From contig OZ218961.1 of the NCBI GenBank assembly GCA_965112735.1, forward strand, positions 2,728,001-2,792,000: 64,000 nt of DNA, written 5' to 3'. Below the pieces are notes generated by a model, which was not told the DNA's origin, made no database searches, and saw only the letters and a list, made by a program, of their open reading frames with translations. Below are positions 5,536 to 58,015 of this stretch, one piece after another; positions within the stretch are counted from its first letter, which is position 1; each line of letters opens with the position of its first letter. Source of the DNA: Phaeosaccion multiseriatum. Lineage: Eukaryota > Protista > Ochrophyta, other classes. The position numbers were made by a program, and so were the translations under genes.

Positions 5536-6048
5536 GCAAAGCTGAGGCCTTCATTTATTCCTCAGCTGCTGGGAACATCGGTCAGTTTGTACAGCCCCTT
5601 TGCTGCATCATCATCGACGCAAATCTTTCATACGACCCGATGGTGGTGTCTTTCTCTACACCAACATTGTACTGCTCCTAATGTCACAAGCCTCTCCCAC
5701 CCCTCCCCCCCCCCCCCGGACTTCATGAAGTCAAGCACAAATCGAAAACCGTCATGATTACGTAAGGAATGGGGAACGTTCCTTTTTGGATCTTCCCTCT
5801 GCCCTTCCCCCTCCTCGTTTCCTTCCTCATCTTCCACAGTCCACCGCAGCTACAAAGAAGAGACAGACCAGGAACGCTTATCTCATCACCGCCAAGAAGA
5901 AGTCCGTGCTTCTACGCCGTCAGCCTTCAGGTTTGTCAAGAGAGCAGCAGGAGGAGCCAGAGGATGATCTTTTCGGTAGTGTGAGCGACGAGGAGTAGTA
6001 GAAGTCGCAGTGGAAGATGCAGCAGTAGCAGCAGAAGCAGCAGGCAGA

Positions 6049-24880: not shown

Positions 24881-27800
24881 ATGGCGAATCCCTTCTCAGT
24901 CGTAGGTAAGTGAAGCACGCCATCATCGGATCCGACAGTAGAGCAGTAGCAGCAGCAACAGTACCAACAACAGTAGTGGCAACAGCAGCGCCCAACTCCC
25001 CCCTCCTCTTCGTATTCCCCCCCTCCGCGATCTTCCTGGGGCAGAGGACCCATAGAAAATGAGCAAAAAGGGGGGAGCAGGATCGTATAAAAGCTCTTTA
25101 GAACATGAGCAAAAGGGGGGGAGCAGGATAGCATACAAGCTCTTTAGTACCGAAGAGGCATCTCTGAGCTTTCCTTGGTGGTTGTACAGCGCCTCCTCCT
25201 CCTCCTCCTGCTGCTGCTGCTGCTGCTCCTGCTGCTGCTGCTCCTGCTGCTGCTCAACTATCCCTTCTCCCTCATGTCCTTCAACTTGGCCCCGCTATAG
25301 TCGTCGATTGCCGCAACCTGGAGCCAGTGGGAGAGAGCACCTACGTGGAGGTTCAGCTCATCGTCCCTGGAGAGAGACACCGCGCTCAGGGATGCAGCGC
25401 TGTGGACGAGGCCGTCAATCCCGTGTGGGAGGAGGAGCACCTAGCCTTGTGAGTCAACAGCCCCAGCTAACCTCCTTCATGTTGGGCATAAGTATGGCAG
25501 CGCGACCTCCATGCGTCCTTTCCCTGACAAACCGCAATACTTTGACTTGCTGCTTCTGTCTTGAACTTCATCCCCACCATGTGCTTTGGCAGCGATACCG
25601 ACTCCACAGGGCGCGTCGGAGATGTGGAGATGCGAGTATTCCAAACCGATGGACGGGGAGCCACGCCACAGCTGGTGGGAGAGTGTATACAACCCTTAAG
25701 CAAGCTCATTGGGAACCTGCACCGCAAGACCTTTCGGTTGCAGGCAGCGGGAGGAGGAAGCAGCAAGGGCGTCATCCGAATTAGCACGGCCTACGGTGAC
25801 GAGGACGAGCGAGGCCGGAGAGAAACAGGGGACCTAGATGATCTCGAGGAAGGAATGACGTGTGAGGTCAACTACAAGGGAAGTGGTCAGTACTACCCCG
25901 GACAGATCACTCGGCTGCACAGCGATGGAACGTGCGACATCAACTACGACGACGGAGAGAAGGAGACGCGCGTGGAGCCCTCCTCCATCAGGGGGGCACA
26001 GAACGCTCCTCCCTCGCCGCGCAGTCGGAATCAAAGTCCTACCATGAGAGCGAGTCGAGGTAGAGGGGATGCTCATGAAGCGAATAAGGGCCGCAACAAG
26101 CTGGAGGAGGGCATGAAGGTGGAGGCCAACTATAGAGGCAAAGGGCGGTACTACCCTGGGCGTATCGCTCGCGTGCACCGAGACGGCACTTGCGACATTG
26201 ATTATGACGATGGCGATAAGGCGCTGAGGATGGAGCCTGATATGGTGAGGGTCAAGGGGGGAGGAGCGAGTCGAGGAGCGAGTCGAGGAAGGGGAGCCGC
26301 TCAGGACAGCGAGGATGAGGGCAGCAACAAGCTGGAGGAGGGCATGAAGGTGGAGGCCAACTATAGAGGCAAAGGGCGGTACTACCCTGGGCGTATCGCT
26401 CGTGTACACCGAGACGGCACTTGCGACATTGATTACGACGATGGCGAGAAGGAGAGAATGCTTGAGCCGAGCCTCGTCAGAGTAAAGGGCAGAGGGAGAT
26501 CGGGAAGCCCTGTCAGAGCCAGAGCCGGTGCGGCATCGACAGAGAAGCTGGCCGTGGGTGATAGGGTGGAGGGCAACTACAAAGGCAAGGGGCGGTGGTA
26601 CAAGGGCAAGATCTCTCGCGCCTGGCTCAATGGATCATACGATATCGAGTACGATGACGGTGAGAAGGAGACCAGGGTAGCCAGGGAGCTGATCAGAGAG
26701 CGCGATGGAGGAGGCGGTAGGAGAGGAGGAGCAGCTCAGGAGAGCGAGGATGAGGGCCGCACAAGGCTGGAGGAGGGCATGAAGGTGGAGGCCAACTATA
26801 GAGGCAAAGGGCGGTACTACCCTGGGCATATCGCTCGCGTACACAGAGACGGTACCTGCGACATTGACTATGACGACGGCGATAAGGCGATGAGGATGGA
26901 GCCTGATATGGTGAGGGTCAAGGGGGGAGGAGCGAGTCGAGGAGCGAGTCGAGGAAGGGGAGCCGCTCAGGACAGCGAGGATGAGGGCAGCAACAAGCTG
27001 GCGGAGGGCATGAAAGTGGAGGCCAACTATAGAGGCAAAGGGCGGTACTACCCTGGGCGTATCGCTCGTGTACACCGAGACGGCACCTGCGACATTGACT
27101 ACGACGATGGCGATAAGGCCATGAGGATGGAGCCTGATATGGTGAGGGTCAAGGCGGGAGGAGCGAGTCGAGGAAGGGGGGCCGCTCAGGACAGCGAGGA
27201 TGAGGGCAGCAACAAGCTGGAGGAGGGTATGAAGGTGGAGGCCAACTACAGAGGCAAAGGGCGGTACTACCCTGGGCGTATCGCTCGTGTACACCGAGAC
27301 GGCACTTGCGACATTGATTACGACGATGGCGAGAAGGAGAGAATGCTTGAGCCGAGCCTCGTCAGAGTAAAGGGCAGAGGGAGATCGGGAAGCCCTGTCA
27401 GAGCCAGAGCCGGTGCGGCATCGACAGAGAAGCTGGCTGTGGGTGATAGGGTGGAGGGCAACTACAAAGGCAAGGGGCGGTGGTACAAGGGCAAGATCTC
27501 TCGCGCCTGGCTCAATGGATCATACGATATCGAGTACGATGACGGTGAGAAGGAGACCAGGGTAGCCAGGGAGCTGATCAGAGAGCGCGATGGAGGAGGC
27601 GGTAGGAGAGGAGGAGCAGCTCAGGACAGCGAGGATGAGGGAAGGGGCAAGCTGGAGGAGGGCATGAAGGTGGAGGCCAACTACAGAGGCAAAGGGCGGT
27701 ACTATCCTGGGCGTATCGCTCGTGTACACCGAGACGGCACCTGCGACATTGACTATGACGATGGCGATAAGGCGATGAGGATGGAGCCTGATATGGTGAG

Positions 27801-30800
27801 GGTCAAGGGGGGAGGAGCGAGTCGAGGAGCGAGTCGAGGAAGGGGAGGAGCTCAGGACAGCGAGGATGAGGGCAGCAACAAGCTGGAGGAGGGTATGAAG
27901 GTGGAGGCCAACTACAGAGGCAAAGGGCGGTACTACCCTGGGCGTATCGCTCGCATACACCGAGACGGCACTTGCGACATTGATTATGACGATGGTGAGA
28001 AGGCGATGAGGATGGAGCCTGACATGGTGAGGGTCACGGGGGGAGGAGCGAGTCGAGGAGCGAGTCGAGGAAGGGGAGGAGCTCAGGACAGCGAGGATGA
28101 GGGCAGCAACAAGCTGGAGGAGGGCATGAAGGTGGAGGCCAACTACAGAGGCAAAGGGCGGTACTACCCTGGGCGTATCGCTCGCGTGCATCGAGACGGC
28201 ACCTGCGATATTGATTACGACGATGGTGATAAGGCGGTGAGGATGGAGCCTGATATGGTGAGGGTCAAGGGGGGAGGAGCGAGTCGAGGAGCGAGTCGAG
28301 GAAGGGGAGGAGCTCAGGACAGCGAGGATGAGGGCAGCAACAAGCTGGAGGAGGGCATGAAGGTGGAGGCCAACTACAGAGGCAAAGGGCGGTACTACCC
28401 TGGGCGTATCGCTCGCGTGCATCGAGACGGCACCTGCGATATCGACTATGATGATGGTGAGAAGGAGAGAATGCTTGAGCCGAGCCTCATCAGAGTAAAG
28501 GACAGAGGGAGATCGGGAAGCCCTGTCAGAGCCAGAGCCGGTGCGGCATCGACAGAGAAGCTGGCTGTGGGTGATAGGGTGGAGGGCAACTACAAAGGCA
28601 AGGGGCGGTGGTACAAGGGCAAGATCTCTCGCGCCTGGCTCAATGGATCATACGATATCGAGTACGATGACGGTGAGAAGGAGACCAGGGTAGCCAGGGA
28701 GCTGATCAGAGAGCGCGATGGAGGGAGAGAAGGAGGAAGGGCCGGTCAGGACAGCGAGGATGAGGGAAGGGGCAAGCTGGAGGAGGGCATGAAGGTGGAG
28801 GCCAACTATAGAGGCAAGGGGCGGTACTACCCTGGGCGTATCGCTCGTGTACACAGAGACGGCACCTGCGACATTGACTATGACGATGGCGATAAGGCGC
28901 TGAGGATGGAGCCTGATATGGTGAGGGTCAAGGGGGGAGGAGCGAGTCGAGGAGCGAGTCGAGGAAGGGGAGGAGCTCAGGACAGCGAGGATGAGGGCAG
29001 CAACAAGCTGGAGGAGGGCATGAAGGTGGAGGCCAACTACAGAGGCAAAGGGCGGTACTACCCTGGGCGTATCGCTCGTGTACACAGGGACGGTACCTGC
29101 GACATTGATTACGACGATGGTGATAAGGCGATGAGGATGGAGCCTGGCATGGTGAGGGTCAAGGGCAGGGGGACATCAGGAAGCCCCGTCAGAGCCAGAG
29201 CAGGCGCCTCGTCGACAGAGAAGCTGGCCGTGGGTGATAGGGTGGAGGGCAACTACAAAGGCAAGGGGCGGTGGTACAAGGGCAAGATCTCTCGCGCCTG
29301 GCTCAATGGGTCATACGATATCGAGTACGATGACGGCGAGAAGGAGACCAGGGTAGCCAGGGAGCTGATCAGAGAGCGCGATGGAGGAGGCGGTAGGAGA
29401 GGAGGAGCAGCTCAGGATAGCGAGGATGAGGGAAGGGGCAAGCTGGAGGAGGGCATGAAGGTGGAGGCCAACTACAGAGGCAAAGGGCGGTACTACCCTG
29501 GGCGTATCGCTCGCGTACACCGAGACGGCACCTGCGACGTTGACTACGACGATGGCGATAAGGCCATGAGGATGGAGCCTGATATGGTGAGGGTCAAGGG
29601 GGGAGGAGCGAGTCGAGGAGCGAGTCGAGGAAGGGGAGGAGCTCAGGACAGCGAGGATGAGGGCAGCAACAAGCTGGAGGAGGGCATGAAGGTGGAGGCC
29701 AACTACAGAGGCAAAGGGCGGTACTACCCTGGTCGTATCGCTCGTGTACACCGAGACGGCACCTGCGACATTGATTACGACGATGGCGAGAAGGAGAGAA
29801 TGCTTGAGCCGAGCCTCGTCAGAGTAAAGGGCAGAGGGAGATCGGGAAGCCCTGTCAGAGCCAGAGCCGGTGCGGCATCGACAGAGAAGCTGGCCGTGGG
29901 TGATAGGGTGGAGGGCAACTACAAAGGCAAGGGGCGGTGGTACAAGGGCAAGATCTCTCGCGCCTGGCTCAATGGATCATACGATATCGAGTACGATGAC
30001 GGTGAGAAGGAGACCAGGGTAGCCAGGGAGCTGATCAGAGAGCGCGATGGAGGGAGAGAAGGAGGAAGGGCCGGTCAGGAGAGCGAGGATGAGGGAAGGC
30101 GCAAGCTGGAGGAGGGTATGAAGGTGGAGGCCAACTACAGAGGCAAAGGGCGGTACTACCCTGGGCGTATCGCTCGCGTACACAGAGACGGCACCTGCGA
30201 CATTGACTATGACGATGGTGAGAAGGCGATGAGGATGGAGCCTGATATGGTGAGGGTCAAGGGGGGAGGAGCGAGTCGAGGAGCGAGTCGAGGAAGGGGA
30301 GGAGCTCAGGACAGCGAGGATGAGGGTCGTACAAGGCTGGAAGAGGGCATGAAGGTGGAGGCCAACTACAGAGGCAAAGGGCGGTACTACCCTGGGCGTA
30401 TCGCTCGCATACACCGAGACGGCACCTGCGACATTGATTATGACGATGGCGATAAGGCGATGAGGATGGAGCCTGACATGGTGAGGGTCAAGGGCAGGGG
30501 GACATCAGGAAGCCCCGTCAGAGCCAGAGCAGGCGCCTCATCGACAGAGAAGCTGGCTGTGGGTGATAGGGTGGAGGGCAACTACAAAGGCAAGGGGCGG
30601 TGGTACAAGGGCAAGATCTCTCGCGCCTGGCTCAATGGGTCATACGATATCGAGTACGATGACGGTGAGAAGGAGACCAGGGTAGCCAGGGAGCTGATCA
30701 GAGAGCGCGATGGAGGAGGCGGTAGGAGAGGAGGAGCAGCTCAGGACAGCGAGGATGAGGGCAGCAACAAGCTGGAGGAGGGCATGAAGGTGGAGGCCAA

Positions 30801-33800
30801 CTATAGAGGCAAAGGGCGGTACTACCCTGGGCGTATCGCTCGTGTACACCGAGACGGCACCTGCGACATTGATTACGACGATGGCGAGAAGGCGCTGAGG
30901 ATGGAGCCTGATATGGTGAGGGTCAAGGGGGGAGGAGCGAGTCGAGGAGCGAGTCGAGGAAGGGGAGGAGCTCAGGACAGCGAGGATGAGGGCAGCAACA
31001 AGCTGGAGGAGGGCATGAAGGTGGAGGCCAACTATAGAGGCAAAGGGCGGTACTACCCTGGGCGTATCGCTCGTGTACACAGAGACGGCACTTGCGATAT
31101 TGATTATGACGATGGTGAGAAGGCGATGAGGATGGAGCCTGACATGGTGAGGGTCAAGGGGGGAGGAGCGAGTCGAGGAGCGAGTCGAGGAAGGGGGGCC
31201 GCTCAGGACAGCGAGGATGAGGGCAGCAACAAGCTGGAGGAGGGCATGAAGGTGGAGGCCAACTACAGAGGCAAAGGGCGGTACTACCCTGGGCGTATCG
31301 CTCGTGTACACAGGGACGGCACCTGCGACATTGACTACGACGATGGCGATAAGGCGATGAGGATGGAGCCTGACATGGTGAGGGTCAAGGGCAGGGGGAC
31401 ATCAGGAAGCCCCGTCAGAGCCAGAGCCGGTGCGGCATCGACAGAGAAGCTGGCCGTGGGTGATAGGGTGGAGGGCAACTACAAAGGCAAGGGGCGGTGG
31501 TACAAGGGCAAGATCTCTCGCGCCTGGCTCAATGGATCATACGATATTGAGTACGATGACGGCGAGAAGGAGACCAGGGTAGTCAGGGAGCTGATCAGAG
31601 AGCGCGATGGAGGGAGGGAAGGAGGAGGCGGAGGAAGAGAGAGACGAAATGAGAGCAGGGGGCGGCGGACAGGATCGATCGGAGACAGCGAGGATGAGGA
31701 GCGTGCAAAGCCGCGCAGTGGGAGCAGAACGAGAAGGACAAGTAGAGGCAGAGAGGACGAAGAGGCTGTGAGGAAGGCGCGAACAAGGCGGTTTGGAGGG
31801 GGGAGCGACAGAAGCGATGAAGAGGAGGACGACAGCAGCGTTGGGGGTGGAGGAAGGCGGAGAAAGAGAGGCAGAGATGATGGAAGGGACAGCGGAAGAG
31901 GAGGCGGGGGAGGAGAAGGAGTGGGCCGATCGTACTCCAGTCGCAGCCGGGATGGGCGGCGACGGCGGGGAGAAGATGGGGATGAAGATGAGGATGAGGC
32001 ATCTGAGGGGGAGGAAGGACGGGAGGAGGGGCGGCGGAAGCGCAAGCAGCCGCTCATCAAGAGGAAGGATGAAGTCAAGTGTTGTTGGAGGAGAACCAAC
32101 GCCTATGCCCGGGCGAAGCGGACCGCGGTGTGGAAGGAAGGAACGGTACTAGCGGCGCACTCGGATGGAACGTTCTCCATTCGGTATAGAGACGGAGGGG
32201 CGATGGTGGACGATGCCCCCGCGGACACCGTCAAACTGAAATTCAACAACGAGGGTGAGGGCAGCAGCAGCACCCGCAGCACCAGAACGAAGAAGAGGAA
32301 GGGTGGGAGTGAAGAAGAAGGAAGCAGTGGAGATGACGAGGAGGGAGGGGGAGGAAGGCGCGGGGGCCGAAGCGGGGTCAAGCGGGGCCGGTCCACAGTG
32401 ACGACAAAAGCTCCGGCGGCGGACGGGTGGGCCTTTGTGCATCACATGGCGGAAACCTTGTACGAGCGTAAGGCCATAAGTAAGAAGCCCCCCCCCCTGG
32501 AAAAAATTGAGCGGGAAGTTCGCCGGGAGGAGCGGGAGCAGGAGATGAAGGACGAGGAGGAAACCAAGGAGGGTGGCGTCGACTTGAATGTCGAGCGCAT
32601 CGAAAAAATCCTGGGGAGGAGAGAGATGTTGCGCCTCCGCGACGCCTTCGTGCAGTCTGATGTCGATGATGTGGGCGACTTGGACACAGGGGCGGCAGCG
32701 GCAGCGTACCTTCGACTGGGGAGGAGGGTGGCCAAGGAGGACGTGAAGCGCTACCTTCGAGCGGCCTATCCGGACAGGTACAAACAGGCAGCCATGCGCC
32801 ACTCGGTGGGATTTACGGACTTCGTCAAGGCATTTGCGTGGGTGTTTTATAGCGAGAGCCTGTTGAAGGACATGGGCATCGGGGAGGACGAGGAGGAGGA
32901 GGAGGAGGAGGAGGGGGAGGAGGAGGGGGGGGGGGCGTGGAGTGAAGACTCGGAGAGGCGGAGAGCGAGCGGAAAGAAGCGCTCTGTGCGAGGCAGCAGC
33001 ATCAGCAGGGGAGGGGGGGGGTCTCGGTCCTACTCACCCACCAAGCGGAGCGGAGGAGCAGGAGGAGGAGGGCGCACGCGAAGGGTTGGTTTCGGGTTAG
33101 GCCAGGGAGGGGGAGGAGGAGGAGTAGGCGGAGGAGGAGAGGGAGGAGGGGGAGGATTGGAGATGTGGGCCCAGAGGATGGGACGAAAAGAGATGAGCAA
33201 GGTGGAGCGGGTGTTCGAAAGGAGGGCTACGGAGGGGAGGGAGGGGAGGCGCGGCCTCAAGGTGAGTCAGTGAGTGAGTGAGTGAGTGAGTGAGTGAGTG
33301 AGTGAGTGAGTGAGTGAGTGAGTGAGTGAGTGAGTGAGTTAGCGAGTGAGTGAGTGAGTGAGTGAGTGAGTGAGTGAGTGAGTGAGTGAGTGAGTAAGTG
33401 TGTTAGTGAGTGAGTGAGTGAGCGAGTGAGTGAGTGAGTGAGTGAGTGAGTGAATGAGTGAGTGAGTGAGTGAGTGAGTGAGTGGGTGAGTGAGTGAGTG
33501 AGTGAGTGAGTGAGGGAGGGAGGGAGGGAGGGAGGGAGGGAGGGCAGAGAAGAGGGGAGGGGAGGCCCACTCACCCGTGTAGAGGGGCAGAGAGCGAGAC
33601 GCACACACCTGTACACACCTACTCACCCACGCACACACGCACCCGTACCTCCACACACCTACGCACGCACGCACCCACACCCACATCCTTACACACCTTC
33701 GCACCCCCGCATCACACACACACATGTATACACACCCACGCACGCACACACATACACACGCACGCACGCACACGCACACACGCACGCACCATCCCGTAGG

Positions 33801-36800
33801 TGAAGGAGCTCCGCGGCGCCTTCTTGGACCTTGATCATGATATCAGCCCCGCACAGCTCAAGGCCTGGTGTCAGGAGATGGACCTCAGGGCGATGGACCG
33901 ACTCGGATTGGCAGGTGAGGCATGGGGAGAGGGGAGGGGAGGAGGGAGGGAGGGAGGGAGGGAGGGAGGGAGGGAGGGAGGGAGGGAGGGAGGGAGGGAG
34001 GGAGGGAGGGAGGGAGGGAGGGAGGGAGGGAGGGAGGGAGGGAGAGAGGGAGGGAGGGAGGGAAGGAGGGAGGGAGGAAGGGAGGGAGGGAGGGAGGGAA
34101 GGGCGCGATACCATGTTTCCCCCACACAACTACCAGCCGCACTCCACTGGCGCAATAGTGTAGTATTAAAGCGTCGTACTTAACATCGGATACTATTTCC
34201 TCTGTCCGTTTCTCCTCCCCTCCCCTCCCTGCACTCTCGCTCTCCCTGCCTTGTCGTTACATCACTGAACCTGCGCCACTGGACGGGACTCAACTGAACT
34301 GGACTGCCTCGGATTGAACAATGAAACAAACTATAGACTTTGCCTACACCTACTACACCTTGTTCTTCGACGAGAGCAGCGGCGCCATTTGGGGAGCAGA
34401 GACAGGGGATGCCCAAACCCTTGCCCTCTCTTCTCACCGAGGCAGAGATGCCCTGCTCAATGTATCGGGCCGGAGAGGGGACGGAGGGCTCAGGTCAGTG
34501 ACGGTGTTGATGGGGGTGGTGGCGCTGCATTCGAGAGTGGAAGAAGGGAGGAGAGGGAGGGAGGGAGGGAGGGAGGGAGGGAGGGAGGGAGGGAGGGAGG
34601 GAGGGAGGGACGGAGGGAGGGACGGAGGGAGGGAGGGAGGGAGGGAGGGAGGGACGGAGGGACGGAGGGAGGGAGGGTGGTGGGTATGCCGCCTCTCGAC
34701 GACTTACCATTTCCGTCCTTATTTACTGTAACTGAAGCACACATTGTCTCCTCTCCTCTACCTCGCTCTCTCTCCCTCTCTCTCTTCCTCGCTCTCTCAC
34801 TCTCTTTCTCTATCTCTATGTATCTCTCTCCCCCATCCCTTCTATATCTCTGCCGGACCGACCATGTTTGTCATTAACACGGCACCCTCCTTCGACACCC
34901 AATCCTGCCTACTTGGCACCCCAACCTTCCCTACCTCATTCATCAGAACCATCGCGGAAGTGGCTGCCACAGTGTTTCAGGAGGAGAAGTGGGAGGGGAC
35001 TCCGGAGCAGCATGCCTCCCTACTAAGGTGATGAGGAGGAGGGGAGAGGAGAGGAGAGGAAAGGGGCGGACCTAAGCATACCTAAGCATACGTAATTCGT
35101 GTGTTTGTGTGGTTGCACTCTTGCCTTTGTTTTCTTCATGCTTACGATAATTTCCTTTGCTTTGCTTTGCTTTGTTTTGCTTTGCTTTGACCCCGGGGGG
35201 GACGCTCTGTTGTTCTGCCGATCGCTCCATCGGGAACACAGACGTCTCTGCGTGGGCAGACCCTTGGTACAGCAAGAGCTGCTCCGAGCCACGAGGGATG
35301 CCTTCGAAGGCCTCGATCAAGACGGGGTGGGAGAGCTTCCCCTCGGTCACGCCAAGGCCCTCGTCAACGGCCTTAGACCCGGGCACGACAAGAGCACCCT
35401 GCTCGACGCACTCGCCAACTTCACCTCCACCATCGGTGGCGAAGATGGGAAGAAGCAAAGAGGCAAGCAAGGAGGGAAGCAAGGACGGAAGCAAGGAGGC
35501 GGCGGCAGGGGGGAGCAAAAGGAGGGCGGTGGGGAGAAGGAGGAGGAGGACGAGGAGGAGGAGGAGGAGGAGGGGTTCGATGGGTCTCGTCGTCGTCGCT
35601 CCTTCTCTTCGACTCGACCTGCCTCGTCCTCCTCGACCTTTGCTCTGCCGGAGTTCTTCGCAGCCTTTGGCTTCGCCTTTGAGAGCAGTGGAGGAGACGC
35701 CAAACCTACCGTATCCACCGCCTTTGCAATGCTGAGGCTCCATGCCACATTGGCAGAGGCAAGGACGGCAGGGGAGACGGTGCTACGCTACTTGGACAAC
35801 GTTCTTACCAGCGTTGGCGACGCTCGGCTGTGGAGAGTCAACTGCAGCAACGATGTGTTCTTCTCTCGGGTGGGCCGCCACAAGGGTGGGGTTGAGCTCA
35901 TGAAGGCCGTGGGCTTTGCCGACGGAATGGTTACACACAACAGCAGCAGCCGAAGCAGTAGCAGTAGCAACAACAAGAGCACCTCGACTATGGGTGGGGG
36001 TGGGGACGGAAACCCTCGGAAAGAATGGATGATCCTGGAGGGTACGGTGGGTGCCAATGGAAAGCCCATTGCCGACATCGGAGAGGAGCAGCGCCGAGTG
36101 CTGAGCACCTGCAGAGCCGAGGTTGAGGCTGAGGTCGTGGCTATGGAGGGGGCCCCAAGCGTGGCCGCAGCTCTCAGAGAGATGCGTGGCAGCACCGGCC
36201 AAGAGGGAGGAGGAGGAGGAGGAGGAGGAGGAGGAGGAGGAGGAGGAGGAGGAGGAGGAGGAGGAGGAGGAGCGGGGGGGGGGGGCTTAAGCGTTGGGGA
36301 TGTGAAAGGGGCCGCGGAGATGGCACTTCAGTACGTGACGAATGTGCTGAGGAACCCTCGGGATGGGAGAATGCATCGTATCCGCATTGCTAATCCCGCT
36401 TTCCACGGAGCCATCGGTCGACATCTGCCCGCTGGCGGCGGGGGCGGAGGTGAGTGAGAGAGAGGGAGAGAGCGAGGGAGGGAAGGAGGGAGAGAGGGAA
36501 ATAGAGAGAGAGGAGGGAGGGAGGCAGGGAGGGAGAGAGGGAGGGAGGGAGGGGTCCTTTCACCCCCCACCCCCATCTAACCTTTGCACCCTCACCCCCT
36601 TGTCTCTTTATGTGTTGCATGTGTGTCTGTCCCTCCCCACCCCCCTCTCTCTGTGTGTGTGTGTATGTGCGTTTCTCTCTCTGTCCCTCCCTCCCCCCCA
36701 ACTCTCTCTCTCTCTCCATGCCTGTGTCTATGTGTGTATCTGTCTACCTCTCCCTGCCCCCCCCCCCCCCTCTCTCTCTCTTATCCAGGTCTACTCATGG

Positions 36801-45800: not shown

Positions 45801-45971
45801 AAGAGTGGTGGTGCTGCTTCTTCATCGTCTTCTTCGTCCTCGGGTACCGTCGTTGGTGGTACAGCTGCGGCCGCCGCTGAGCAGGCACAGGCCACGGAGG
45901 TGCTGTGTGTGGAACTAGTGCGCACAGCCGGCACTCCACATCAGCCGAAGCATCAGCCGTTGGTGATACAG

Positions 45972-46002
<31 letters not shown>

Positions 46003-49000: not shown

Positions 49001-52000
49001 CAGTCTGCGGAGCAATCAAGACGGGGCAGGCGCACTGGTCAGCGGCTGTGGTGGTGTACCACCAACAGGCGCGGGAGTAGGCCCTGTGGGGTCGGCACTC
49101 AGAGGGGGCTCGCTTGCCTCTCTGCTGCGAAGTGGACTCGGCAAAGCCATCGGTACGTGCATACACACGTACACACGCAACACGTACACACACACACACG
49201 CACACACACACACAGCAGGCGTAGCGGCGTCCTTCCTTGACTTACTCATGCAGGACCCTGCCCCCCAGCAGTGGCCTGGCCTGTGGTCTAGGCTCGTTCT
49301 GCTTGCGCAGCTCACTCATCCTTCTCTCTCCATCCTCCTCGGACCCCTTCCTCTCTTGCTCGTTGCTGTACCCGCTCGCCCCTCGTCTTCCTTTGTCCTC
49401 CCCACCTCTGCTGCTGCCCCATATGCCTATACGGCCTGTGTTTACCCACCTCACCTCTACCCAAAGGGACCGGAGCTCCCGCGTCGCTGGGTAACGAACC
49501 CGAGCTTGACCACTTACGAGGTGCTTGGCTCAGGCAGCAGCTCGCCCGAGAGAAGCTGCAGTCAGAAGCTACAGCAGTTGGTAATACGGCAGGCACAGGA
49601 GCAGGAGGTGGTGTGCCGCTGTGGAATGACCTGTGCGGCAAGATCCAGAGGGCCGTGTTCGGCTCCATCCAACCTCCAAAACTGCTCGAAGCGCTGGAGG
49701 TCCAGGCAGAGCAACAGCAGCAGTTGGTGATGCAGCAGCAGCAACAGGATCAGGGTCACAGATGGCATGGAGCGAGAGAGGAGCGGCGCAGCGTAGCCAA
49801 AGCAGCGATGATGGTGTTACGGGGGAGGGATGTAGGGGGGGCGGTATCAACCCTCGGGCGGCAGGCCTCCACCCTGGGCGCTGCCCCGAGCGGTTTCCTC
49901 ACGGTGCGGCAGCTGCAGGGAGCCTTGGAGAAGGACTTGGGCATCCCCATCACCCAAGTAGAGGTGGACATGCTGGCAGGTTGCTTGCGGAGTGTGCCGT
50001 CCGCTGCCTCTGCTGCAAGTAAGAGAGGAGGGGGGGGAGAGTCGATGGTACCCTACGAAGGCCTCGCTCTCCTCTTCCAAGTCTGTGGGAGTGAGCTCGG
50101 ACTCACGGCGCGAGGAGGAGGCACGCGAGGCAGTAGGGGAGCAACGAGAGGCCACACCAGTACAAGTGGCGACGACCCGGATTCCACCTTGTTGGACATC
50201 TTGGCTCTGTGTCTCACCCCCCACCCGAGCGACAGACCGCACCCTGCTCTACTGCTTCGGCATCCCTTCTTCGAGGGCGTGGCGACGGGCTCCGCGGCTG
50301 AGATACACGCCAAGAGAGGAGCGGCGGCGCTGCTGGGAAGTGGGGAAGCAGTGATGTACGTACTGAAACGGCAAGTGCAGCAGCCCCTGGACGAGCTCAG
50401 CTGTCTCATGATAGAGGCCATGCAAGACTTGCAGGGGATGGTTGGCGACGACCAGGGGGGAGGAGGAGAAAGGGCAACAATGACGACCAACATGGCAACT
50501 TCCTCCCCCTCCTCCTTCTTCGACGTGGGCAAGCTCGCGGAGGCCATTCGAGTGCTCTGCCGCTTGGGGCATGGCTGGATAGGGAGGATGGGCCACAGCA
50601 ACACTAGCTCACGATCATTCACTAGTCGAGCAGGAGCACCAGGAGCAGCTGCAGGAGAAGGAGGAGGGGGGGGAGGAGGAGGAGGAGGAGGACGTACTGG
50701 CAAAGAGAGTGCCGGGCTCAGTGCGGCTCAGCACACCACCGCTGTCGATGCCATTCTTTCCAGGGGCCTGCTTCAGCGGGTGGTTGCTCTCTCACTCCTG
50801 TTTCTGGAGCGACCAGAGGCGGACGCCTGCGGCCGAGCAGTACCTGGTGTCAGCTTCCTAGAGGGTGATCCCCGACTCAGCCTGGGCTCCCGGCTGCTGA
50901 TGGTGGTGGCGCGGTTGGTGGAGGGGTTTGTGTTGGACCTTAGCTACCCTGGTAGTCCGGTGGGGGCCTACGTCGATGTGGTACTACGCTGCTTGGTCAT
51001 GCTGTATATGGGGGAGGAGGGGCACTTGGCTGCCAAGTACGGAGCCGTGGGGCCCAGCTCCCTCGTGCTGCACCACTCCAACTTCAACTCATACTCATCC
51101 TCATCCTCATCCTCTCAAGTTGGTGATACAGGAGTAGCAGACCCGCACCCACCACCGCGTCGTGTGAGTGCAAACACCAACCACTGGACGCCGCCCATGA
51201 GTCGTCTCTTTGAAGGCCTCATGGTGGATGCCGTTACGGAAACCGGTAATGGTAGCCACCTCTACCCGCCTCTCCAGCGCTACTTGCAGCGGGCTGGCGG
51301 CCTGGCGCACCGACTGGAGGGGATGGCAGTGGATGGAAGAGGAGGAGGAGGAGGAGGAGGGTATGGTCTCGTGGACGAATTCGATGAAGTGGAGGAGCAT
51401 CTAAGAGCAGAGGCAGCGGCAGAGGCTGGGGGAGGAGGACGAAGAGGACGGGAAGAAGGTGGTGGGAGAGGAGGAAGACAAGATCGAGTTCGACAGGGTG
51501 ATTCAGACTGGGATGGGGGGGATAACAACGAGGAGGAAGAGGAGGAGGAGGAAGAGGACGACGACGACGACGAGGAGGTGCTCTTGGAGCCGGAGTTCGC
51601 TTCCATGGTGAACCACACTGCCACCCTTCGTAGAAGTGGAAGCGGGGATGGGGGTGGGAGCGGGCGAGGCCTTCTCCGGGCTCCGTGGTGCGAAGGCTTT
51701 TTGAGATCCTCGGCCTACTTTGGGGAGATTGTCGGCCTGGGAAGGGCTCTACAGAGCCTTCACGCGGCCTTCTCGAGCGGAGGAGAGGCCCGACGGGCAC
51801 CGGCCCAGGGGGGGAGGAGACGTAGTGCTGGCTACGTGGTGACGCTGGTGCGGATGAGCGTCGGGGACAACAGCGGCAGCACCCTCGCGCCCCCGGAGGA
51901 CGAGTCGCAGCAGCAGTCGCAGGAGCAGCAAGGGTCTTCTTCTAATCGAGGCGCGGCAAGGCCAACAGCTCTCGGTCAGTTAGAGGCACCCGCGGGGGGG

Positions 52001-55000
52001 CAGGGAGAGGAGGAGGATGGAGCCGTGCTTCAGCGAGCGCAGCTACTGATCGACTTTGGTGTGGCCTCCAAGCTCGCACCCCTGTTGCTCGATGGTGACG
52101 AGGAGGTGCGAATGACCACTCTCAACGGCATGGCGGTGGTGATGCGCTACGGAGGGCCCCTGCTTAGGGGCTTGGCCCTGGCCGGGGGAGGAGGAGGACG
52201 AGGAGGAGGGGTGGGGGGAGATGGGGATGATAACCTCGGCGACGACGACTGCGACAGTGGTGGTGGTGGTGGTGGTGGTGGTGGTGGTGGTGGTGGTGGT
52301 GGTGGTGGTGGTGGTGGTGGTATGGTCGTCGACCCCCGAGCGCTTGTGTGTCTGGGCTTCTGCTCTCCCGTGTGGGTGTCGGGTCTGCTGAGCATCCTTC
52401 GGGGGCGGCCCAAGGAGGGCACCAAGCTGACCAAGCAGAAGGTCCAGACGCTCAATAGAGCGCGCAGAACGGCCCTGCTGGTGCTGAGAGACATGGCAAT
52501 TGCTGGTGACAGGGCCATCGAGGGTTGGCAAACATGCCACGTCATGCGAGCTCTGCAGCAGCTGCTGGTGGAGCAACAAGAGCAGCAGCAACAGCAGCCG
52601 CAGTTGGTGATACAGCAGCAGCACCAGCAGCAAGAGCAGCACGACCTCCCCGTCCTTACTGTGCTGCGGGCTCTCGCAAGGAATGGAAGTGACAGCGCTC
52701 GTCAGCTCATCGACTCGTGCCCCGGCCTGCCTAGAGCCCTCGACTTTTACGGCCTTGAGCTGCCCCGTAAGGTCACTCTCCCTGACTTGGCGGAGAGGGC
52801 GGAGGACTTGGGTCGGCGCGGTGGCATGTTGAGTGAGGTGGCAGAGGTGATGCGCCAAACGCTTGTGCTTCTCAGTACGGCGGTTACGGTGGGGGACGTT
52901 AGCGTTCTTCACCCACCTGTGCTATGGCCACCGCTGGCACAGGAGGACGAAGAGGAGAAGGGCAGGGCGGGTGGCGAGGGCACAGCCGGTCAAGAGCAAG
53001 AGCAGCTAGGTAGACGTCTCGGGGCCGAGGAAAGAGGAAAAGGAGGCGTAGCAGGAGAACAGAGGGAATACACCCACCGGGAGAGGCTGGAGTTGCCCCA
53101 CCCTCTCCTGGAGCGGCTAACTAGCCTCTGCTGGGGTTGGTTGCTTCGCTCCTGGCTTCAGCTAGCGAGAGACGACCCCACACACCCTTACACCAGAGCG
53201 AGGGTGGGCGTGGTGCGTGCTTGTCTCCAACTGGCGACGTTCCTGCTTCGTGCTTCCAACTCCTCCCCATCTGCGGCCCACCTTCGCCTCCTCGTGCTCG
53301 GACCGGTTGACACTCGGCTAGCTGACCAAGCCAGGGCGGCGGCAGGGCTCGGCAGCAGTAGCTTGATGGGGCCACTGGGGCTAGGGGTCACAGCAGAGGG
53401 AGAGGGAGGAGGAGAAGGAGGAGGTGGAGGGGGGGGAGGAGGAAGAAGCAGCTACGACGCGTACTTGGAAGAGGCTGGCGTCGAAGACGAAGATGGCGTT
53501 ACAGAGAATGGCGGCATTTCGAAGGCCGAGAGTCGTGGTACTCGTCGCGAGCTGGCCCGAGCAAGCACAGGCTTGGAAGTGATGGTGCGAGCGCTGTCCT
53601 GCGATGTGCCGCTGGAGCTGTACCACACGCACCCTTTGCAGTCCGTGGTGCCTCAGCTTCAGTCTTGTCTGGCATTGGCCCTCTCAGGAGGAGAAGGAGG
53701 AGGAGGAGCAGGAGGAGGAGGAGGAGGAGGAGGAGTGCTGGTCAGAGCGATGGCTGACGCCGGAATCGGTCTCCGCTTTAAGGATTGCTTAGACCAAGGC
53801 TGTCGCTTGGTCCGCTGGGCCACGGGGCAGGGGCTGGAGGCGGCCCACCTGGGGGAGTGGTACGCACCGGCCCGACAGACGCGCAAGGTGCTGCTGGATC
53901 GGCTGTTGTGGGTACGCAGCGAGGCCATTCAGTCACAGCTCATGCTGGGCGGCCTTGTAGAGGGGCTACTCACGGACATGCTTGGCGACGCCAACGTGGT
54001 GCATATCACCAATGTTCGCCTGCCCGCCGCGTTTCGCCGCTATAACGGTACGCCCCTGTTACGCAACGAGGCCTTGGAGCTGCTGGAGAGGGTGGTGACT
54101 CGCCGTGCCCGCGCTCCTGCCCTCTGTCTGGAGATGGCCCGTCAAGCACTTCGGCACGGGGTGGCAAGGCAGGAGAGGAAGCGAGTGGGGCGCTACCGTC
54201 AGCGCTCGGTGCGCGCTGGGGTAGGGGTGGCCCTGCGACTACTATGTCGACTCGGAAATCCTCAGCTGGATAGGGAGATGCGCTCTCCTGCCATGGCCGT
54301 GCCGCGCTCGCTCCTCTCGGCCACGCGAAGGGGGGGCAGCGGCCACCTGCTGACGGATGTGAGAAGGAGGTGGGCAAGGTGGATCTCCAGAGTCGCCAGG
54401 GCAGTGGATGGTGATGGAGAGCCAGCGCGGCAGGGGGCTGCGGTGGCGGCCGCGGCGACGGCGGTGGTAGAGAAACCGTCGCGGCAGGGGATGAAGCGCG
54501 AGACTACGGAGCGATCATCTTCTTCTTCGTCCTCATTCTCTTCTCCTTCTCGTTCAAGCTCGAGGGCGTCCAATCAGGACCAAGAAGCAGAGACAGGAGA
54601 AGGAGGAGGAGGAGGAGGAGGAGGAGGAGGAGGAGGAGGAGGAGGAGGAGGAGGAGGAGGAGGAGGAGGAGGAGGAGGAGGGCTAGGAGGAGAGAAGAGG
54701 CGCTTGGTGACGCTGACTTTTAGCAACACAAGGGCGTCAAGCATGCGGCCCACGAGCGTCAGCGGCTTCCTCTCTGCTCTGTCCAGCGTGACGGGCGTGG
54801 CTGTGGAGGGCATGCACGTGACCGGTGTACGCAAGAACTGCACCGAGACAGGAGAAGCAGGGGAGCCCGTCCCTGCTGGTGCTGCGCTTGCCTCAGGAGG
54901 GGGGGGAGCGCTGCCGATTGCGGTGGATCTGCTGGTCACTCCGACGGCGGCTCAGGGCATGTGGCGCCGCTGCTTGGCAGGCATCTTGCTACAGATCCCC

Positions 55001-58000
55001 TCCTCTGGTACAGGAGGAGGAGGAGGAGGAGGAGGAGGAGGAGGAGGGGGTGGCGAGGAGCAGCCCTACCATGTGCATGCTCTGGAGGTTCAGGGGATGG
55101 GGAGGCTCTCTGGAGATGGCTCGGAGGTGCTACAGGAGGGTATGCAGGAGCGTCACCCCATGCATCTGAGCAGCAGCAGCAACAGCAGCAACAGTAGTAG
55201 CCACAAGGCTGGTGGCGGAGGACGAACTGTTGGAGGAGTAGTAGCAGCAGGAGGAGAAGGAGGAGTGGGAGGAGGAGGGGGAGGAGGACGAGGCAGGGAA
55301 ATGGAGAGGTGGAAGCCGCAACAGCACGACGAACCGGAGACGAGGGTTCGTGGGGAAAGTAGGAGTATGGGCAAGTTTGGGTGGCTGGGAAGCGTCCCTC
55401 GGGGTAGAGAAGGAGGAGGTGGTACTACGGGTGGTATCACAGGCAGTAGGCGGGCGACGCCGGCAACAATGGAGCGACCCAGGGGTGGGGGGCGACGGAG
55501 TGAACCAGGGAGGGACCGAGAGCAGCAGCAGCAGCAGCAACAGCACGACAACGACGAGGAGGAGGAGGAAGTGCAGGAGGAGGAGGAGAAGGGCCTTGGC
55601 GAGGGCGAGACGGAAGGAGATCTGTCCGCAGCGCTGGACCGCCTGGGGGAAGGCCTCCTAGAGGTTCAGGAGGCCTTTTCGCAGCGCGCGCTACCTACTG
55701 CTCTGCATAGAGGAGGAGGAGGAGGAGGAGGAGGAGGAGGAGGAGGAGGAGGAGGAGGAGGAGGAGGAGGAGGAGGAGGAGGAGGAGGAGGAGGAGGAGG
55801 AGGAGAAGAAGAAGGAGGAAAGCGATCTGTTGATGGTGATGACGACAGTGCCACGGTGGATCTCGAGGGGCTTTACTGCGCTCTCATGGACCTTCGTCTG
55901 TCAGAAGGGAGGGTGGTGAAGGCCATCGCCTCCGTGCGCCGCATCAACAAAGCGAACATGCGGATGGACTTTGCCGGCTTCATTCAGCTCTTCGCACGAG
56001 CAGCGGGGTTGTATGATCTTCCACTGCCATCCCAGGCCAGTGGAGCCGGAGGCGTGGGTGGTTCCGCTGCCCCTCCTCCGGGGGCGGGGTTGTTGAGTGT
56101 GTCCGTGGAAGGGCCGCTGGACGGGCGGTGGGAAGCGGTGCCGCCCAACAAGATACTCCGCTTCAAGCGCGTCTTCGACAAGCTCGTTATAGAGGAGAGT
56201 GAAGGAGGGGCACTGGGGGCAGACGGGAGGAGGGGGAGGAGGAGGGGGCGGGGGGGGGGCAGCAGAAGCAGCAGTGGTCCGGAGGACGAATCTTTCTCAT
56301 TGGAGAAGCTCCCTGCGGCCTTGTTGCAGCTCTTTCGCTACGAGATGGAGCTGGTGCAGGCCTATGTGGAGGGGCGAAGGGAAGTTATTTCGAGGCTCTT
56401 TGACGGCCGAGTGTCGCTACAGGAGCTCGCACGAGGGGCGGTGCATATCGAGGCCATGAGGAAGAAGAAGAGCGAGAACAAGGCGAGCGATGGTAGTGCG
56501 AGTGTCAGTGCTACGGTCGCTTCGATGTCCTCGTCATCAGCGTCAATGCCGGGTAGCAGCGGTAATCGAGGAGGGGGAGGAGGAGCGGTGGACCGGCAGG
56601 GCACAGGCAGGGGCAGGGGCAGAGCTTCGTCGTCGTCGCCTTGGGGCAGCGCTGGACATGGGCGGCAGTTGGTGCTACAGCAGCAGAGAGGACGGGAAGG
56701 GCCTCCTTCTACGGCTTCCCGACTCTCGCACTCCCCAGACGGGAGGAGACGCAGCGCCGGTGGAGACCCAACAACAAGAGGGCACCCAACAAGAGAGGGC
56801 AGACAAGATTCCCATGCCCCATTGTCGCCCTCTCCTCCTCCTGACCCTGAGCGCCGTCGATTGGCGCGTGAGGAGCAGCCTGAAGACACCCGTGCCTACG
56901 CGGGGAGCGGTGGTAGCGGCAACACCAGTGGCAGCATTTCCCCTCTGAGTAGGGGGGGGCGGCGGCGGAGCAGATCCAACAGTCTGCTCAGTGTGACCTT
57001 TCAGGATGAAGAGGAAGGGAGAGGGGAGGGAGTGGAGGAGAAGGGGGAGAGAGCGGGTCGGGAATGGGAGACATGGGCTGACGAGGAAATGGAGGGAGAG
57101 TTGGAGAGGCAAGCGAGGAGAAGGAAGCTCATGGAGGGTAGGAGTGAGGAAGAAGATGGTCTTTCTCTCTCTGCTCGCGGGGGTGGTGGCGATGGTGTAG
57201 AGAGAAGACCAGCAGCAGCAGCAGCAGCAGCAGGAGGAGGAGGAGGAGGAGGAGGAGGAGGAGCAGCAGCAGCAGCAGCGACTGGGCGGGGTGTTGAGAA
57301 TGACTATTCATCGGAGCCGGAGACCGAGTTGGAGAAAGAGGTCACTATGGAAGCAGCAAAGCTTGCATTCGAGGAGTACGACAGGGATGGAGACGGAAGA
57401 ATCACCATCTCAGATTTGAGGGAGGCTTTCTCTGGTGATGCAGGCGGAGGGGGGGGGGGGCAACCGTGTGTCACTGAGGAGGACATGAGGGAGTGGATGC
57501 TTGAAAGAGATACAGATGGCAAGGGCCACGTCAGCTGGCAGGACTTCCTTGCCGTCTATGGGGGAAGACGAAGTGGAGGAGGAAGAGGAGGACATGCCGG
57601 AGATGATGGTAGGAATGTGGTACCTGGATCTGAGGCGGCGGAGAGGGAGCCGCAGCATGATGAAGAGGAAGAGGAAGAAGAGGAGGAGGAGGAGGAGGAG
57701 GAGGAGGAGACGGTGTCCATCACGCCAGAGGAGCACGCGGCTTTACTCACGGTCTTTGATATGTACGATGGGAATGGGGACGGTCTCATCAGCTATGCCG
57801 ACCTCAGAGCCACCTTTGCCAGGCAGGGACAGACGCCGAGCGACAGAGAGCTTCGGCAGTGGATCGCCGATAGGGACTCGACGGGAACGGGTACCGTCGA
57901 CAGGAAGGACTTTGCCCGGAGCTTTCAGGTCGCCATGAGGAAGGGGGGGGGGGGGGGAGGAGGAGGAGGAGGGGGGGGGGGCAAGAGGAGGGTTAGTAAG

Positions 58001-58015
58001 GGACTGACGCAGTAG
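24881..58015 (+). CDS. Giant multidomain protein (about 9,916 aa, 11 exons): C2 - 26x Tudor-like - EF-hands - 4x PUB - WD40 - pseudokinase - EF-hands
   Basis: Exons 24881-24905, 25301-25448, 25593-33261, 33800-33914, 34337-34493, 34947-35027, 35242-36449, 36789-42014, 42328-42482, 42735-49152 and 49467-58015 all have GT-AG ends and matching phases. The total is 29,751 nt, or 9,917 codons including the stop. Domains run across junctions (C2 over exons 1-3, PUB2 over exons 7-8, kinase over exons 10-11). Confidence 0.8.
25059..25148. repeat. Imperfect direct repeat (about 45 bp x2) in intron 1 of the giant gene
   Basis: atgagcaaaaaggggggagcaggatcgtataaaagctctttag followed by atgagcaaaagggggggagcaggatagcatacaagctctttag. 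Confidence 0.75.
25843..31605 (+). repeat. Coding tandem array of 26 Tudor/Agenet-like repeats
   Basis: One divergent first unit, 18 units of type KVEANYRGKGRYYPGRIARVHRDGTCDIDYDDG and 7 of type RVEGNYKGKGRWYKGKISRAWLNGSYDIEYDDG. Confidence 0.9.
33262..33513. repeat. (GTGA)n intronic microsatellite starting at the 5' splice site
   Basis: About 250 bp of gtga units directly after CTCAAG|gtgagt. Confidence 0.95.
33945..34100. repeat. (GGGA)n intronic microsatellite
   Basis: Direct reading. Similar tracts lie at about 34550-34677, 36460-36552 and 60710-60783, with the complement at 21420-21510. Confidence 0.9.
38586..56680. repeat. Dispersed 15-bp motif CAGTTGGTGATACAG (both orientations)
   Basis: Perfect copies start at 38586(-), 38765, 40206, 44074(-), 47203, 48259, 48925(-) and 52601. 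One-mismatch copies start at 45957, 49721, 51117 and 56666. Confidence 0.9.
42530..42626. repeat. 34-bp intronic minisatellite, about 3 copies
   Basis: Unit tgacacacccccgtagaactgataccctttcatc. Confidence 0.85.

Follow-up and report, generated by a model that had tools for sequence, protein, structure and literature searches.

The 64,000-nucleotide (nt) stretch of Phaeosaccion multiseriatum DNA analysed here (the window; GenBank assembly GCA_965112735.1, contig OZ218961.1, positions 2,728,001 to 2,792,000 of the forward strand) is GC-rich (~60%) and carries five long open reading frames (ORFs) on the + strand, located at 25546-33270, 35096-36454, 36581-42091, 42567-49727 and 49292-58012 of the window. 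An initial annotation, made from the sequence alone, proposed that these frames are joined by splicing of eleven in-phase exons into a single protein of about 9,900 amino acids (aa). An independent reconstruction of the splice chain gave the same result, with 11 exons joining in phase over a gene of ~33 kb (24881-58015) to form 29,751 nt, corresponding to 9,916 codons and a stop. Comparison with related proteins indicates that the locus is very probably one protein-coding gene and, if the model holds, the product is among the largest proteins of this alga. The predicted protein begins with a C2 domain, which is followed by an array of 26 Tudor units and by EF-hand-like units. PUB domains 1 and 2 come next and are separated from PUB domains 3 and 4 by an EF-hand pair. 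Behind them lie a coiled coil, further EF-hands and a WD40 propeller, then a dead kinase interrupted by an insert, the armadillo/HEAT solenoid and, at the C-terminus, two EF-hand pairs.

Exon structure and continuity of the gene

All 10 introns begin with GT and end with AG, and all phases agree. Donors are mostly GTGAGT, GTAAGT or GTACG, and most acceptors are preceded by pyrimidine-rich tracts. The mean codon-usage score is +10.0 in exon windows vs -10.5 in intron windows, and a search of the coding-score profile for hidden introns within the large exons revealed no intron-like stretch. The short first exon has a parallel in the relative from Mallomonas annulata (P0023), which also has few residues ahead of its C2 domain. 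Long (GTGA)n and (GGAG)n microsatellites are found in introns 3, 4, 5 and 7 (33269-33544, 33941-34044, 34553-34654 and 36450-36560), and the (GTGA)n tract begins directly behind the exon 3 donor, so that many alternative GT donors lie in a row at this point.

The exons are assigned to one gene because the proteins of relatives cross the joins in order and because three domains are cut by introns. Pfam and homology searches with the spliced model were run exon by exon, and the relatives P0002, P0006, P0008, P0017, P0025 and P0028 were compared with the window using tblastn. Three relatives, each a single predicted protein, together align in order over every join from exon 3 to exon 11. P0001, found with a word-index search, is a 2,180-aa uninterrupted ORF on a 7.4-kb metagenome contig with the order Tudor, EF-like units, two PUB domains, EF-hand and two PUB domains. 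Its collinear match to the window begins at the final Tudor units and reaches ~40624 (exons 3 to 8), with the three mini-exons 4 to 6 included. The match of P0002 (7,637 aa) is likewise collinear, starting in the Tudor array and ending in the C-terminal EF-hands, and covers exons 3 to 10 and the terminal EF-hands of exon 11, and its neighbouring residues fall on neighbouring exons (2787 and 2788 at the exon 6/7 join, 4434 and 4435 at exon 8/9, and 4489 and 4491 at exon 9/10). P0006 and P0008 cover exons 7 to 11 including the exon 10/11 join, as the kinase match in exon 10 is followed by a match to exon 11 further downstream in the protein; residues 3400-3830 of P0006 align to 49877-51295, after its exon 10 kinase match.

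Exon 4 aligns to residues 2693-2734 of P0002 (E=4e-5) and 478-514 of P0001. The match of exon 5 to P0002 (residues 2731-2757) is weak and correctly ordered, and the join at this exon, GLA/D/FAY, parallels the sequence LTLADFVS of P0001. Exon 6 shares 59% identity with residues 2757-2788 of P0002 (E=1.9e-9) and 52% identity with residues 558-578 of P0001. Exon 8 is matched in order by P0001, P0002, P0006 and P0008, and exon 9 aligns to residues 4435-4489 of P0002 (E=1e-8), immediately after residue 4434, which is matched to the end of exon 8. Residues 4491-4536 of P0002 then align to the start of exon 10 (42744-42881, E=5e-12). The domains divided by introns are the C2 domain (exons 2 and 3), the WD40 blades (exons 8, 9 and 10) and the kinase (exons 10 and 11). 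In the PDB, a 64-aa piece of exon 11 (..LLDILALCLTPHPSDRPHPALLLRHPFF..) matches kinases almost exclusively in subdomain XI at their C-terminal ends (best E=0.005).

It is very improbable that two or more separate genes merely look joinable, for instance a C2-Tudor gene with its stop at 33271, one with PUB and EF domains, and one with WD40, kinase and solenoid. In favour of this reading, the public runs for this genome are genomic only and not RNA, a 1.8-kb repeat-rich gap separates exon 3 from exon 7, an in-frame ATG is present at 34321 just ahead of exon 5, and many database relatives are far shorter than 9,900 aa. Against it, single predicted proteins of several other organisms cross every join in order, and one of these comes from an MMETSP transcript whose ORF is annotated as complete. 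The mini-exons within the gap, three in number, are conserved and in phase, domains are divided across joins, the first ATG of exon 10 lies no earlier than the middle of a WD40 blade, and the short relatives are mostly from short contigs. If it holds, the single-gene model provides a corrected full-length gene with domain boundaries suited to binding assays, and at least some public models of relatives stop short at contig ends.

Domains of the predicted protein

The C2 domain of the initial annotation is matched weakly in the window. The half encoded by exon 2 scores 16.4 bits with Pfam C2 (E=0.011, profile positions 9-53 of 104), which is below the cut-off of 22, and the Asp-rich Ca2+ loops were not seen. 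Exon 2 aligns to the C2 domain of P0023 (residues 26-54, E=0.004), and C2 is above the Pfam cut-off at the N-termini of P0023 (23.1 bits) and P0025 (25.8 bits).

Tudor_5 is matched in 26 stretches (Pfam, E=4.5e-168), with Agenet and 53-BP1_Tudor overlapping and the JMJD2A family Tudor_2 also among the best families. A motif scan found exactly 26 units of three subtypes, and Tandem Repeats Finder reported 24 copies with a period of ~231 bp over the array. Differences between units occur mostly at third codon positions (1390, vs 365 and 250 at the other two), which argues that each unit is selected as protein. The units resemble, in sequence, the short methyl-lysine-reader type (53BP1, PHF20, SGF29, KDM4A) and not extended Tudors. 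They retain aromatic and acidic residues (the Y of ..NY.., both Y of ..RYYPG.., and the Y and D of ..DYDDG..) at positions that would line a putative cage like that of 53BP1.

Four PUB domains were detected by Pfam as two pairs with scores of 59.9 and 72.7 bits, and an EF-hand pair lies between PUB 2 and PUB 3 in the window, P0001 and P0002. No other part of the family is conserved as well. PUB 4 aligns to the PUB domain of PNGase (E=1.3e-6), including an entry solved with the p97 tail, and to UBXN6 (E=0.0035), and keeps the pattern N..P.D.KYR.I...N..F..G..E....GF. The likely partner, a CDC48 candidate in the same genome (G000:C6:1953500-1961500; last exon at 6807-7076 of that locus), ends in ...GVDDLYG, the tail canonically bound by PUB domains. 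A complex predicted for PUB 4 and this tail scored 0.09 (mark 0.34), which counts neither for nor against binding. The CDC48 candidate has many small exons and repeat-rich introns, and a Gly/Glu-rich spacer precedes its DDLYG end.

Canonical 12-residue EF-hand loops were found by a pattern scan at 37433, 40262, 40553, 43617, 57380 and 57767 (n=6). Many EF-hand families were matched in Pfam, and the EF-hand_7 pairs score 92, 38 and 93 bits; Ca2+ binding is predicted. WD40 is above the Pfam cut-off (35.8 bits, cut-off 27).

The Pkinase match in the window is sub-threshold at 23-28 bits (28.4 bits for profile positions 75-196), and the family is above the cut-off in P0002 (38.3 bits) and P0017. 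Subdomains VIb-IX and XI of the C-lobe are recognisable, and the N-lobe is not. In the window, VRDVRPET stands in place of HRDLKxxN and KLVWAP in place of the DFG region. The window protein and nine relatives lack the DFG motif and have other residues in place of the catalytic Lys, Asn and His, several relatives losing even the Asp, whereas DxWxxG of subdomain IX is kept. Between subdomains IX and XI, both the window and P0002 have a large insert. Because the HRD..K..N loop and the DFG motif are lost, the kinase domain is a catalytically dead pseudokinase.

The helical region that follows is an armadillo/HEAT solenoid of ~900-1,300 residues. A profile built from eight family members matches consensus armadillo repeats (E=3e-9), and an AlphaFold2 (AF2) model of the corresponding region of P0002 is all-helical (mean predicted local distance difference test (pLDDT) score 74.9). 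Foldseek with this model retrieved karyopherin-beta, CAND1 and similar HEAT/ARM proteins with a probability of 0.96-1.0 and low template modelling (TM) scores, as expected because solenoids are flexible. An AF2 model of residues 441-900 of exon 11 made without an alignment was not usable (pLDDT 39), and a search of the ESM Atlas for look-alikes gave weak leads only (scores <=0.86), among them an 'N-terminal kinase-like protein' at 0.76.

Together, these results confirm the 26 Tudor-like repeats, four PUB domains, WD40 repeats and pseudokinase of the initial annotation, as well as its EF-hands at 37433, 40262, 40553 and 43617, where canonical loops were found, and its four terminal EF-hands, which form two C-terminal pairs. 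Its 'long helical region' is indeed helical and can now be specified as the solenoid. Coordinates are listed in the table.

Table. Exons and predicted features of the gene, in window coordinates.
Feature	Position	Strand	Content
Exon 1	24881..24905	+	ATG and 8 codons; donor G/GTAAGT
Exon 2	25301..25448	+	First half of C2 (VVVVDCRNL..YVEV..NPVW)
Exon 3	25593..33261	+	Second half of C2, Tudor array, basic/acidic linker
Tudor array (exon 3)	25852..31690	+	26 tandem units of 72-86 aa, three subtypes, DNA period ~231 bp
Tudor-like barrel (exon 3)	~32074-32240	+	27th, degenerate
EF-hand-like unit (exon 3)	~32620-32850	+	First such unit
Intron 3	33262..33799	+	Part of the repeat-rich gap ((GTGA)n, (GGAG)n, CA-rich) across introns 3-6, up to 35241
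Exon 4	33800..33914	+	Mini-exon, part of second EF-hand-like unit; acceptor tag/GTG, donor CAG/GTGAGG
Exon 5	34337..34493	+	Mini-exon, (D)FAYTYYTLFFDESS...
Exon 6	34947..35027	+	Mini-exon, TIAEVAATVFQEEKWEGTPEQHASLL
Exon 7	35242..36449	+	EF-hand-like unit ~35243-35430; PUB 1 ~35759-35923; start of PUB 2 ~36305-36449
Exon 8	36789..42014	+	End of PUB 2; EF-hand pair 37409-37591; PUB 3 ~37850-38090; PUB 4 38297-38509; coiled coil ~38690-39000; EF-hands 40262, 40553; first WD40-like blades ~41430-42010
Exon 9	42328..42482	+	Mini-exon with propeller blade (..AVRDFAYVPHAQLILALVSGKGQ)
Exon 10	42735..49152	+	WD40 blades 42735-42885, ~44150-44370; EF-hand pair ~43590-43960; Gly-rich low-complexity inserts; pseudokinase subdomains up to IX ~48282-48770
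Exon 11	49467..58015	+	Kinase insert; kinase subdomain XI ~50180-50270; armadillo/HEAT solenoid ~50270-54400; low-complexity region; C-terminal EF-hand pairs ~57350-57560, ~57740-57930; stop codon

Relatives in stramenopiles

An exhaustive protein search with the first 1,200 residues of exon 8 retrieved 52 proteins at E<1e-30, many of them 3,000-7,600 aa long. Members were found in the oomycetes Phytophthora lilii [GMF15318.1], P. idaei, P. cactorum, P. oleae, Lagenidium giganteum [DAZ98959.1] and Achlya hypogyna, in the thraustochytrid Hondaea fermentalgiana [GBG26827.1] (P0025, annotated as 'sir2E'), and, for chrysophytes and pelagophytes, in Mallomonas annulata [EukProt P000829] (P0023), Chrysophaeum taylorii and Pelagophyceae sp. 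CCMP2097 [KAJ1457763.1]. Further members are the MMETSP transcript and proteins on many marine metagenome contigs; P0002 and P0006 are also metagenome proteins. By homology, the gene is a member of a family of giant proteins of oomycetes, thraustochytrids, chrysophytes and pelagophytes, so the architecture is not unique to this genome and the gene is not a one-off.

The same architecture is seen by Pfam in P0002, P0017 and P0023. Conserved blocks share 25-45% identity with the window protein and are aligned in the same order: Tudor array, EF-like units, four PUB domains with the EF-hand pair inside, WD40, dead kinase, solenoid and terminal EF-hands, with C2 at the N-terminus wherever an N-terminus is present. 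The window protein (9,916 aa) is the longest of those examined and differs in its heavy padding of poly-Gly and RG stretches. Tudor counts also vary: none are detected by Pfam within residues 1 to 4,400 of P0017, and P0002 has many more. Two relatives carry an additional domain. Hondaea P0025 has a C-terminal SIR2 deacylase at residues ~6047-6250, which explains its misleading name, and the EukProt relative P0041 has a ubiquitin-family domain directly after the PUB domains (residues 2314-2372).

All ten named records that were looked up are labelled hypothetical, left unnamed or named after one domain. No description of the family was found in the literature on this domain combination or in the Phytophthora kinome paper (PMC3019232), in keeping with the initial annotation, in which no characterised protein of this architecture was recognised. 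This would be the first description of the family, found only as 'hypothetical protein' records, in four stramenopile groups that include Phytophthora crop pathogens. A paralogue search of the P. multiseriatum genome (67-Mb, 22-contig assembly) returned only poly-Gly matches, indicating that the gene is single copy, and a word-index search with the frame at 42567-49727 gave no match.

Possible roles of the protein

PUB domains bind the C-terminal tail of p97/CDC48, and methylated lysine is read by short Tudor barrels like those of 53BP1, PHF20 or SGF29. Ca2+ is sensed by EF-hands, and WD40, pseudokinase and ARM/HEAT modules are protein-binding platforms. The best explanation overall, with the chances evenly balanced, is that the locus is one 11-exon gene, a copy of the family described above, with a product that works as a very large, multivalent Ca2+-sensitive adaptor. 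A model in which this adaptor also reads methyl marks and works with CDC48/p97 is tentative and less likely than not, its mechanism being drawn from the roles of the same domain families elsewhere. The four PUB domains would attach to the ...DDLYG tails at the C-termini of the CDC48/p97 hexamer, and methylated clients, proteins or assemblies, would be held by the Tudor array. The block of WD40, pseudokinase and solenoid may form a further protein-binding platform, and a rise in Ca2+ would cause the EF-hands to alter the shape or contacts of the scaffold. Modest support for a connection to CDC48, ubiquitin or the modification of lysine comes from the DDLYG tail of CDC48, the ubiquitin-family domain of P0041 and the SIR2 domain in Hondaea. 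It is doubtful that an adaptor so far seen in stramenopiles only physically couples methyl-mark reading by the variable Tudor array to the CDC48/p97 segregase, through four PUB docks fitting the tails of the hexamer, under Ca2+ control; if it does, methylation would feed into the extraction or disassembly of proteins by a path not known from animals, fungi or plants. No characterised protein was found that combines an array of methyl-mark readers, four docks for CDC48/p97 and many Ca2+ sensors, and the family would be a candidate link of protein methylation and calcium signalling to the segregase.

Several observations weigh against this interpretation. The four public runs containing this DNA (one sample) are genomic only, as is evident because contigs over 34045-40040 read straight through non-coding sequence. 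Binding of the PUB domains to CDC48 is putative, and PUB 1 and PUB 3 diverge from the KYR signature by sequence reading. A single Tudor unit gave only weak matches (E ~0.2) to solved methyl-lysine readers in the PDB. The lack of the usual Asp-rich loops means that Ca2+ binding by the C2 domain is not supported. Glycine makes up approximately one fifth of exons 7, 10 and 11, in long runs, and much of the protein may therefore be disordered. Because many database relatives are fragments, few of them document the architecture in full.

Known systems share parts of this arrangement. The p97/VCP cofactors PNGase/NGLY1, UBXD1/UBXN6 and HOIP have the PUB domain in common with the window protein, and the likely partner is again CDC48 with a DDLYG tail. 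However, in these cofactors PUB lies beside a catalytic, UBX or RBR module, whereas here four PUB domains, predicted to bind, are set within a 9,916-aa Tudor/EF-hand/WD40/pseudokinase scaffold. Tandem Tudor barrels that confer multivalent binding are shared with Drosophila Tudor and mammalian TDRD proteins and with 53BP1, PHF20, SGF29 and KDM4A, but the window protein has 26 near-identical short units that lack the extended-Tudor/SN-like extension, and array length varies greatly among its relatives. For the C-terminal half, the comparison, one of architecture, is with the kinases or pseudokinases followed by an ARM/HEAT solenoid (ULK4, Fused/STK36, SCYL1 and Vps15). ULK4 and SCYL1 also have a degenerate kinase ahead of a long alpha-solenoid, and Vps15 carries a WD40 propeller in the same polypeptide, although in the window protein WD40 precedes the kinase. 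The kinase of the window family differs in its low Pfam scores (23-38 bits), unrecognisable N-lobe and large insert between subdomains IX and XI.

The modules are open to other interpretations. In one, which is unlikely, the protein is a nuclear platform in which the Tudor array reads histone methyl-lysine and the remainder recruits remodelling factors, CDC48 and, in Hondaea, a sirtuin. The best Pfam families of the array are those of histone readers (Tudor_5, Agenet, 53-BP1_Tudor and JMJD2A Tudor_2), SIR2 is fused to the Hondaea relative, and basic stretches resembling nuclear-import signals, such as RRKRKQPLIKRK, are found behind the array. However, Pfam searches of the window and relatives found no DNA-binding or other chromatin domain, and the C2 domain, the many EF-hands, the WD40-pseudokinase-solenoid block and the size of the protein are more typical of cytoplasmic or cytoskeletal scaffolds.

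Multi-Tudor proteins of germ granules bind methyl-arginine clients, and a self-associating condensate scaffold, in which the Tudor array is its own ligand through methylated RG/RGG motifs of its linkers and CDC48 is not central, was also considered. The 26 units alternate with RG/RGG-rich linkers, including GGGASRGASRGRGG and GRGRSGSPVRARAG, and the protein contains long Gly-rich tracts of low complexity. This possibility, now quite improbable, is weakened because the RG-rich linkers are not conserved: the linkers of P0002, the oomycete proteins and the Hondaea protein instead abound in Lys, Glu and Ser. The GC-rich genome and its codon bias may well account for the RG content. The Tudor units resemble the methyl-lysine-reader type and not extended Tudors, and the four PUB domains are conserved above all other parts of the family.

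A dead kinase followed by an ARM/HEAT solenoid also recalls the ciliary proteins ULK4 and Fused/STK36, and a Ca2+-responsive flagellar or cytoskeletal scaffold would be consistent with the named lineages carrying the family, which make flagellated cells. The solenoid has weak matches to ARM proteins of the ciliary central pair, SPAG6 (E=0.39) and 7sqc_P1, but these are no better than the generic matches to karyopherins and CAND1, and the Tudor and PUB domains are left unexplained, giving this role a low probability. The multivalent adaptor is preferred among the functions considered.

Repeats and small conserved elements were also noted within the gene. In-frame poly-glycine runs of up to 33 residues pad the window protein and are lacking in the homologues. 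Runs of >=6 residues number 14 in exon 10 and 12 in exon 11, with examples at 42927-43030, 44290-44340, 45000-45100, 48760-48830, 54600-54690 and 55700-55790. The 15-nt word CAGTTGGTGATACAG, which writes ..QQLVIQ.. in the protein, occurs 16 times in the gene on both strands at <=2 mismatches. Exact copies are located at 38586, 38765, 40206, 44074, 47203, 48259, 48925 and 52601, and copies with 1-2 mismatches at 39357, 39525, 40330, 45957, 49575, 49721, 51117 and 56666. Apparent 'joints' in contigs placed on the window are a product of this dispersed word and not of splicing. A small block at 39380-39600 (..FKVGSKIRIGSG..ERFVTG..VLVLDRPL..H..G..), between the coiled coil and the EF-hands, matches no Pfam family and is conserved, recurring in P0001, P0002, P0006, P0008 and others.

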